The position numbers and the translations under genes were made by a program. This document shows positions 52,060 through 53,502 of a stretch of DNA of 64,000 bases, piece after piece. Below the pieces are notes generated by a model, which ran no database searches, was not told where the DNA came from, and saw only the letters and a list, made by a program, of their open reading frames with translations. How positions within the stretch are numbered: position 1 is the stretch's first letter; each line of letters begins with the position of its first letter. Origin of the DNA: Pavona decussata (lineage: Eukaryota); NCBI GenBank assembly GCA_977016875.1, contig CDRNST010000093.1, positions 7,254,001-7,318,000 on the forward strand, in the 5' to 3' direction.

Positions 52060-53502
52060 ATGAAGACTTTCGCAGCTCTTCTCCTTATCAGCGCCTTTGT
52101 GGCTTATGTGTCCACTGAAGAGATGGCTTTTCACAAAGCTGTTTTTCAATTCTTGGACAAACGACATGATGAGAGAATGGCTCAGGTTCTAAGAGACCAG
52201 GGACTTCCCGAGGATACCTTGGTTGCCAGCGATCATCCCGAACCACCAGAATGGATGGTAACCAAAATGACTGATTCGTTCTTTTATTAGCTCTTTTATT
52301 TTCTTGCTTCTTTTTAACTACAAAGTTGGTGTACCTTCCCTGGCATTGACCTAGCCACAGTAAATATCGACGATTACGTGATTTATAGATATGACAAATT
52401 TCATTTAATTTTTTATGTTTGTTTAAATTGTTGTGTATGTTGTCTCGAGAGAAATTTGAAAATTTTATTCAAACTTCACGTTCTAGAGACGTCACATTCT
52501 CTCTCTCCACAGCGCTCCATAATTTTTTCTAATTTTAAAAGATGGATGAGGAAAACTACAATAGCATTACGGTGATAATTTACGCATTTGCGTGACCGTA
52601 CCACCTTGAGTTGTGGGAGGTTATGGATGTACTGATTTATTTTTCTCTGTATAGAAACCTTGCGTTGTGAGGGGAAAAATGTGTTGGAAGATGGCGGGAC
52701 ACGATGCCTGTAAGAAGCTGACCTGTATTGATAACCTCTTCAAGTGTTGCAAGGAAAATCACCCAACTCCCCTCCCCTCCCTTCCGCCCATGGAGGTAAC
52801 CATAAAACAACAGATAAGTACATGATACAACACTGTGACGTAAAAATGGCAAAACCGTTCACTTTTTGTGACGACCAAAAGTAACTATAATAACAACAAC
52901 AACAACAACAACAACAGTAAATAGACAGGAAAATAGTTAAAGAAAGCACGCCACGTAACTACAGATAATTAAAATGACCTCACAACGTACATATATCGAA
53001 GATAAATATAAAACCCCTTTAGGCGGCTGGTATGTCGAAGGATAAGACCTATGACTGAACGATTGTCCGAAAAATGTAAAGTTGACCTAAAACTGTGACC
53101 ATGTCTCTTATTTGTTTTTTTCTCGTGGAGAAAAATCGGGCTACACGAATGTCATCGTCTGCAGCAGCTGTCCGATGTTGTGCCAACTTGGTATGTTGTG
53201 GCCAATGAGAAACGGAACGCGTGGAAAATAATCGGTTGGTCATAAATAGTCAGGGTATCTTCACCTCAAAGTTCGTGAACAACTGAGTTTCTTTGAAAAA
53301 CTTTCAAATAGATATGTATCAGGTTGATAAGTTGAAACCACAATACAACCGTGTATTCTTACTTTCCCAAACTATTGTATTCCACTTGCAGAAAGCCTGT
53401 GTGGGACTGCTGTATCTGTGCAGGAAGAAAAGTCCAACCTGTGCTGGTGAACTCTGCTGTTTCGTACGCATCAAGAGGTGCTTTGATATGAAAAAAGAGT
53501 GA
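52060..53502 (+). CDS. Secreted 12-Cys protein with two Cys-rich exon modules (149 aa); join(52060..52257,52655..52795,53392..53502)
   Basis: Signal peptide MKTFAALLLISAFVAYVST and a DKR site in the pro-region. Donors ATG|GTAACC and GAG|GTAACC; acceptors TTTTCTCTGTATAG| and TTCCACTTGCAG|; all phase 0. Exon 2 KPCVVRGKMCWKMAGHDACKKLTCIDNLFKCCKENHPTPLPSLPPME; exon 3 KACVGLLYLCRKKSPTCAGELCCFVRIKRCFDMKKE*. AATAAA at 53631. Confidence 0.85.
52892..52916. repeat. (AAC)n microsatellite in intron 2
   Basis: About 8 AAC units. Confidence 0.9.

Follow-up and report, generated by a model that had tools for sequence, protein, structure and literature searches.

An exon-encoded twin C-x6-C hairpin module, probably shared by a coral peptide array and its neighbouring gene

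The stretch of DNA considered here, the window, comprises 64,000 nucleotides of the coral Pavona decussata (contig CDRNST010000093.1, positions 7,254,001 to 7,318,000) and holds, at 1-47 kb, an array of eight copies of a two-exon gene for a small cysteine-rich peptide and, beyond it, a three-exon gene with two Cys-rich exons, the 52-kb gene. An earlier note had pointed to a twin C-x6-C pattern in the array peptides and in both Cys exons of the 52-kb gene, and had proposed a shared superfamily of disulfide-stapled alpha-hairpins; of this, the link between array and exon 2 of the 52-kb gene is now very probable, while that to exon 3 proved weak. The explanation regarded here as probable for the whole is that the array and 52-kb Cys exons are copies of one ancient hexacoral module encoded by an exon of its own. 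Such a module would have some 35 residues, helix 1 with C-x6-C, a short turn (often A-G-x-D), helix 2 with a second C-x6-C and usually a Pro-rich tail, and with the two Cys of each helix on one face the antiparallel hairpin would be stapled. Its exon, in phase 0 at either end and opening two residues ahead of the first Cys, would be symmetric and so lend itself to duplication and shuffling. On this scheme the array gene would join an exon for signal and acidic pro-piece to a single module that has gained a pair of Cys, the 52-kb gene would be a signal and conserved N-terminal exon followed by a clear module (exon 2) and a much diverged hairpin exon (exon 3), and the products of both would be secreted. 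The exons of the 52-kb gene are as follows.

52060..52257, forward strand: exon 1, signal peptide and conserved N-terminal region, 66 codons, donor GT, phase 0
52655..52795, forward strand: exon 2, twin C-x6-C module and Pro-rich tail, 47 codons, AG/GT, phase 0-0, Cys spacing 6,8,4,6,0
53392..53502, forward strand: exon 3, second Cys module, 36 codons plus TGA, six invariant Cys, Cys spacing 6,6,4,0,6

All junctions of this gene are GT-AG and all are in phase 0, exons 1 and 2 being 198 and 141 nucleotides long. As had been claimed, each of the ten Cys exons of the window begins in phase 0 with (K/E)-x-C and has its second Cys after six intervening residues, Ser standing in its place in array copy 8. 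Recomputed spacings also agree for C3-x2-C4-x3-C5 of the array and for the twin C-x6-C of the two 52-kb exons, 13 residues separating the pairs in exon 2 and 12 in exon 3, with two extra Cys in each. Is such a pattern a sign of kinship? With Cys placed at random, a second C-x6-C at a gap of 12-16 residues arises in 5-8% of trials for each family; if the gap is left free, the figure is 18-36%. The shared pattern by itself is suggestive and not decisive and, since it was moreover defined after the fact, evidence independent of Cys spacing was sought.

A HMMER search with seven full-length orthologues of the 52-kb protein returned 40 proteins (in searches and folds the window exons were used singly, natural full-length orthologues standing for the whole protein). 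Besides orthologues these include proteins with 4-5 separate matches each to the exon-2 part (multi-repeat E-values 1e-10 to 1e-19), from Nematostella vectensis (LOC5509370, LOC5515691), Actinostola and two metatranscriptome/metagenome records, all of them labelled 'uncharacterized'. In these multi-module relatives, of 316-407 residues, a signal peptide and acidic pro-piece precede a row of modules, each with exactly four Cys (spacing 6,12-13,6); after every module come N-R-P and a spacer that is acidic or rich in Pro and Arg; the sea-anemone proteins carry 4-8 modules in tandem. Because the anemone proteins consist of pure four-Cys modules, the twin C-x6-C core is, to judge from sequence, a real self-standing unit. 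The claim that the module is exon-encoded was borne out outside the window: in a Nematostella gene (L048) each module is its own exon, in phase 0 on both sides and starting two residues before the first Cys, behind an exon 1 for signal and acidic pro-piece that itself ends in phase 0, and the Pocillopora gene pdam_00020739 (L049) has the same plan of one module per phase-0 exon. The array gene follows the same plan, as do exons 2 and 3 of the 52-kb gene. Module charge is almost always cationic, from +3 to +11. No Pfam model, solved structure or paper was found for a secreted twin C-x6-C module and the database relatives are all unnamed; there is good reason to regard the modules as an undescribed secreted two-helix family common to corals and sea anemones.

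In Pocillopora, L049:13332-13466 and 16561-16710 (-) contain a second copy of the array-like terminal module and another exon-2-type module on the opposite strand, which suggests a similar local cluster of modules there. The array-like module of P0094, used as query in a word search, returned only itself. The plain four-Cys module of the anemone type (6,12,6) is also present in Pavona, at L051:1501-1680 (C82:1031457-1031585 in the genome).

The firmest tie is that of exon 2. The test profile was a hidden Markov model built from sea-anemone four-Cys modules alone, a family defined here and not curated, and exon 2 is its only significant match among the 1587 six-frame segments of the window (HMMER E=1e-5). 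Aligned by hhalign with the anemone modules, exon 2 falls in the expected register with 90% and P=1.8e-6, a score that none of 100 shuffles with the Cys columns held fixed could reach.

For the array the tie is less direct and depends on a bridging paralogue. The assembly searched as the coral's own genome has 602 Mb, the window lying on its contig C93; on contig C85 is a locus, L018, which joins the first exon and acceptor of the array to an exon-2-like Cys exon, and it is because of this joining that array family and exon 2 are held to be homologous, a conclusion that on sequence comparison seems very probable. The first exon of L018 is plainly of the array type, as its signal peptide and acidic motif show; the 12 nucleotides ahead of its Cys exon are identical to the array acceptor. 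That Cys exon, of net charge +7, has the six-Cys pattern of the array, and its identity to array copy 5 is 38% (E=4e-7), that to the window's exon 2 is 46% (E=5e-6) and that to an Oculina orthologue is 42%, with the stretch C-W-N-D-A after the second Cys and the tail P-L-P-(T/S)-L among what is matched. In hhalign the array alignment gave P=0.0038 (9%) against exon 2, P=4.8e-4 (32%) against anemone modules and P=1.2e-4 (56%) against anemone modules and exon 2 together, none of 200 shuffles with Cys and gaps fixed reaching the last score; the alignments were always gapless and in the register put forward in the earlier note. The profile-profile comparison which that note had named as a check came out clearly for exon 2 and gave the array 56% and exon 3 16%. 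Copy 5 also matches P0088 in BLASTP (E=3e-5, four of the five modules matched), and in a decoy database of the 1587 frames the best non-array matches of copies 1, 2, 5 and 8 are all module proteins, at marginal E-values of 0.007-0.4; copy 7 found no non-array match in the same search.

The eight copies of the array are spaced 4-14 kb apart, mostly 5-6.5 kb, and copy 2 is inverted. Exon 1, of 132 nucleotides, encodes a signal peptide and acidic pro-piece and ends in phase 0 at ..GAG|GTAAAC; an acceptor, ..TTTTAACAG, is conserved ahead of all eight Cys exons. Intact copies have, after the K/E-x-C start, the Cys spacing 6,13-16,2,3,8-9, in which C-x2-C-x3-C after the loop of 13-16 residues amounts to a second C-x6-C with an inner Cys. 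Repeat expansion and a shortened Cys exon mark copies 3, 4 and 6. Copy 8 is probably dead, since its exon 1 donor is GG, not GT, and it has Ser at the second core Cys. The net charge is +4 in copy 1 and -5 to -7 in copies 2, 5 and 7, a reversal of charge within one tandem array, nearly all other modules of the family being cationic.

29602..29733, forward strand: copy 5 exon 1, signal peptide and acidic pro-piece, donor GT, phase 0
Equivalent exon 1 starts: 2800, 16796, 23194, 34715, 41525 and 45877, forward strand; 10960, reverse strand
3595..3741, forward strand: copy 1 Cys exon, spacing 6,14,2,3,8; net charge +4
9679..9846, reverse strand: copy 2 Cys exon, inverted, spacing 6,16,2,3,9
18660..18884, forward strand: copy 3 Cys exon, K-D-C-x6-C start, then repeat-expanded and shortened
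25083..25307, forward strand: copy 4 Cys exon, expanded and shortened form as in copy 3
30377..30538, forward strand: copy 5 terminal Cys exon, spacing 6,13,2,3,8; net charge -6; predicted helices 2-14 and 18-32
36592..36891, forward strand: copy 6 Cys exon, expanded and shortened form as in copy 3
42636..42800, forward strand: copy 7 Cys exon, spacing 6,16,2,3,8; net charge -5
45877-46008 and 46520-46675, forward strand: copy 8 exon 1 and Cys exon, donor GG, Ser for the second Cys

The status of exon 3 is a closer call. An alignment of 20 exon-3 sequences, from several genera and from both the 52-kb family and a sister family (same three-exon plan, homologous exon 1, five-Cys exon 2, seven-Cys exon 3), meets the module profile over 32 columns in full twin C-x6-C register. 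The hhalign result of only P=1.6e-3 (16%), with one of 200 Cys-fixed shuffles reaching the score, tells against including it, and the case for membership of the module family is about evenly balanced. A diverged duplicate of the module is favoured because of the phase-0 K-x-C-x6-C start, the predicted fold and the type of the terminal exon in the related Pocillopora gene, which is a clear exon-2-type module (78%). Somewhat short of an even chance, and the best placed of the rivals, is that exon 3 lies outside the module family as a separate C-terminal Cys-rich helix pair, which would have co-evolved with exon 2 into one four-helix, multiply cross-linked domain, the 52-kb protein then being a single fold and not two modules. 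The much stronger conservation of exon 3 (mean column identity 85%, against 59% in exon 2) speaks for this, as do the sister family, where the odd Cys of exon 2 is offset by a seventh Cys in exon 3, beside the second core Cys (5+7, a total of 12), and the predicted geometry of exon 2, whose extra Cys are on one helix and cannot pair together. The shared start, twin spacing and predicted hairpin, and the Pocillopora terminal exon, speak against it, and the one-domain and the module readings of exon 3 are in any case compatible.

For the fold, AlphaFold2 predicts from the array alignment two helices, residues 2-14 and 18-32, with a predicted local distance difference test (pLDDT) score of 81-86 in the first 30 residues, ahead of a tail that is floppy. 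A natural full-length 12-Cys orthologue of the 52-kb protein, with as many Cys as the window copy, is predicted as all-alpha, with helices 64-80/84-101 in its exon-2 part and 111-126/130-149 in its exon-3 part (pLDDT 74-83) and an N-terminal region of low confidence. The alpha-hairpin of the earlier note survived the AlphaFold check that had been named for it, in that the array peptide and both modules of the orthologue are predicted to be helical, and neither beta-rich nor of unrelated folds. Foldseek against the PDB gave no match at E<=0.001 for the array or orthologue model; in a separate structure search, stapled hairpins were among the best, with the vicilin-buried peptide VBP-8 (6o3q) at Z 4.1 and a root-mean-square deviation (rmsd) of 1.7 A over 36 residues, a Jug r 2 peptide (9q1l_F) at Z 5.5 and 1.6 A over 39 residues, and acrorhagin I (6ux5) against the exon-3 hairpin at Z 5.0 and 3.1 A over 47 residues, all tied with generic helical hairpins. 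The best score for the orthologue in the ESM Atlas, 0.76 to spider toxin precursors, is under the noise level, and profiles of the array, exon 2 and the full-length family, run against PDB sequences, yielded nothing relevant at E<=10.

Judged by simple geometry, the most likely pairing of the core Cys is outer with outer and inner with inner, because the position sums of these partners are equal (in copy 5, 3+31 = 10+24) and because the Cys of the four-Cys modules cannot pair within one helix and so have no other pairing in a hairpin. The other Cys are less settled in place. One is at the start of helix 2 in exon 2 and in the sister family; the CC of exon 2 is in the window copy and in one Oculina paralogue. 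An inner C-x2-C, as in the array, recurs in one Porites lutea orthologue and in the second Pocillopora module, which like the array has a tail Cys as well. Two extra Cys per 52-kb module, as the earlier note had it, is right for the window copy; the sixth Cys of exon 2 varies among paralogues, three of the four having five Cys and one a sixth elsewhere. Of its movable third disulfide, the mobility of the extra Cys was confirmed and a simple third disulfide in each module was not, the Cys totals being odd: most members of the 52-kb family have 11 (5+6), at odds with two staples plus one and so a point against the scheme in its simplest form. Given odd totals, and both exon-2 extras being on one helix, the extra Cys are probably inter-module or inter-chain links and not a private third bridge for each module. 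The Porites lobata orthologue P0037 has independently lost the core Cys that is lost in array copy 8, and has an even total of 10.

The relatives of the 52-kb gene are many. The exon 1 reading frame found 55 database proteins, 63-97% identical, in a word search, and full-length 'hypothetical' proteins of 150-153 residues from Oculina, Desmophyllum and Porites share the predicted exon junctions, as does a Montipora orthologue. The coral's own genome has four further complete copies, one on the window's contig, 32 kb upstream of the window, and three on C15. Sister-family loci (L035-L039) are at C15:2903339-2949781, C93:7229531-7229671 and C169:1035247-1035387; those on C15 are interleaved with copies of the 52-kb family, Montipora has adjoining genes of both families (P0066, P0090), and the array, the 52-kb gene, its paralogue and the sister family are all together on one contig. 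The 52-kb family is found in both the complex and the robust clades of stony corals, and a word search with array exon 1 matched only this or near-identical assemblies; by this reckoning the 52-kb family is old. The suggestion that the 52-kb gene is an older relative of the array fares well as to age; the array may descend either from the 52-kb gene or from a multi-module gene. Exon 1 of the 52-kb gene has the look of a signal peptide and pro-region, but it is 65-97% identical across stony-coral genera, better conserved than exon 2, and is without a conserved dibasic site, and for these two reasons it may belong to the mature protein and not be a discarded propeptide. A (CAA)n microsatellite occupies 52880-52925, inside intron 2.

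Further along the window a two-exon gene on the reverse strand (57143-58189 and 60766-60948) encodes an acidic pro-piece and then a (PRPSG-W/F)n polymer. Its repeats match the Pro/Arg-rich inter-module linkers of P0084 (BLASTP E=1e-5, a weak match in low-complexity sequence), and the gene may be kin to the multi-module proteins, with no module of its own.

What might such products do? A role in host defence, antimicrobial or toxin-like, is a tentative guess by analogy, made because cationic modules behind an anionic pro-piece, with Pro/Arg-rich or acidic spacers, are the layout of defence precursors, plant alpha-hairpinins being the closest parallel (PMC11722136). The divergence of the array (copies are 25-47% identical to one another) and its dead copies fit an effector family; counting against the guess, the anionic copies 2, 5 and 7 are a poor fit to a cationic defence peptide. 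More speculative still is the picture of a hexacoral secreted domain as the unit of multi-peptide host-defence precursors, of anionic pro-piece, cationic stapled hairpins and Pro/Arg-rich linkers, on the pattern of the multi-module precursors of plant alpha-hairpinins. The three parts would be split here among neighbouring genes, one the hairpin array with partly reversed charge, one with two hairpins and one for the Pro/Arg polymer alone. Structural or matrix functions are less likely than defence, and signalling less likely again. The rival that accepts the kinship and makes the products structural, as cnidocyst or mucus components or, for the acidic array copies, skeletal organic matrix, is on the whole doubtful. 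On that view hairpins would serve as building blocks open to cross-linking, spaced by the Pro/Arg-rich stretches, a picture with which the module polymers of 316-462 residues and the long Pro/Arg-rich linkers of the anemone relatives, the inter-chain disulfides to which odd Cys numbers in the 52-kb family point, the strong acidity of some array copies and the linker-like repeats of the neighbouring polymer gene are in keeping; small one- or two-module genes and fast-diverging tandem copies, some of them dead, look instead like effector families.

Returning to the kinship itself, and to the common module that it would imply, several further results weigh against it. HMMER profiles miss the array exons and exon 3 (the best array E-value is 0.7, with a large composition bias), and in whole-genome profile searches the array and exon-2 alignments fail to retrieve each other. 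A maximum-likelihood tree of 52 modules over 40 columns is without resolution, and the positions that it gives, the array next to module 1 of P0088 and L018 elsewhere, are not to be trusted. Several comparisons were picked after the data had been seen and the family sequences are non-independent, for which reasons the nominal P-values are optimistic; the alignments behind the AlphaFold2 models were shallow, 6 rows for the array and 13 for the orthologue. Nor was a spliced joint of the 52-kb gene seen in the contigs of four RNA libraries. What the RNA contigs cover, at 90-95% identity, is exon 1, exon 3 and adjoining intron or upstream sequence; their source is a relative or carried-over DNA, and they say nothing on transcription.

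Do these points amount to a case for convergence, with array peptides, exon 2 and exon 3 unrelated, i,i+7 Cys pairs arising independently as a hairpin staple, and the K-x-C start and phase-0 intron shared by coincidence? The frequency with which random Cys placement supplies a second C-x6-C, the silence of HMMER on array and exon 3, the non-Cys columns of array versus exon 2 (negative in absolute score) and the 16% of exon 3 all lean that way, but convergence is improbable overall and is unlikely for array versus exon 2, given that L018 combines the array first exon and acceptor with an exon-2-like Cys exon down to C-W-N-D-A and P-L-P-(T/S)-L, that Cys-fixed shuffles almost never attain the observed scores, and that the intron position is identical in three genera and the genes are adjacent in the genome; for exon 3 it may hold.

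Disulfide-stapled helical hairpins are not in themselves new, being known from kappa-KTx, conotoxin flf14, B-IV, acrorhagin I, plant alpha-hairpinins and CHCH proteins (PMC11722136, PMC11896702, PMC13608440). What seems to be new is a variant with CX6C spacing that is exon-modular and Hexacorallia-wide. The plant alpha-hairpinins (EcAMP1, vicilin-buried peptides, MiAMP2-type) resemble the module in their helix-loop-helix with two Cys per helix, and in being secreted, mostly cationic and often several to a precursor (PMC11722136), and they are the best structural matches to the models. They differ in their C-x3-C spacing, in having no sequence similarity and in lacking the plan of one phase-0 exon per module; the C-x3-C...C-x3-C motif of alpha-hairpinins and kappa-KTx is not present in the coral and anemone members, which all have x6. 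Acrorhagin I (U-AITX-Aeq5a) of Actinia equina is a secreted cnidarian peptide whose two-helix hairpin is secured by several disulfides, including one between helix and loop (PMC11722136, PMC11896702). Its family, the octocoral relatives and the worm toxin B-IV are disulfide-stabilised helical hairpin toxins, a fold predicted for the module as well, but acrorhagin I has eight Cys in four bridges, while the coral modules have 4-7 Cys and no sequence match in the PDB at E<=10, and the octocoral relatives are intronless genes (PMC11896702), the module being an exon here. The twin CX9C/CX3C (CHCH) proteins of the mitochondrial intermembrane space, which the earlier note had named as precedent, share two CXnC motifs on antiparallel helices and the outer-outer/inner-inner pairing that is predicted for the module, but they are intracellular, lack a signal peptide, are oxidised by Mia40 and have a spacing of 9 or 3; no CHCH match was found here in Pfam. 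The SCRiPs are likewise small secreted Cys-rich peptides of stony corals in duplicated families, but have eight Cys and a beta-defensin-like or beta-rich fold (PMC13608440), as against the 5-7 Cys and predicted all-alpha fold of the peptides here. Pfam scans of all exons and seven relatives gave nothing over threshold: the spider knottin family Toxin_7 scored 11.9 bits (E=0.29), below its gathering threshold of 27, where the predicted fold is helical, and matches to Fer4_6 and Ectatomin were noise. A beta-defensin-like reading of exon 2 (C-x6-C...C-x6-CC) was set aside, the CC not being kept in paralogues and the prediction being helical.

If the module is what it appears to be, at least four gene types, the tandem array, the three-exon family, its sister family and the multi-module proteins of anemones, are tied to one exon-sized unit of about 35 residues, and annotators would have a profile to build for some of the many small secreted Cys-rich genes of stony corals and sea anemones that stay 'uncharacterized' for want of a matching family. 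Peptide engineers may find a scaffold in the new spacing variant of the stapled hairpin. For coral biologists the genes would be candidates for defence or matrix functions and, for those with an interest in how genes are put together, the family would show cleanly, in a non-bilaterian animal, how a symmetric phase-0 exon can be duplicated and shuffled.

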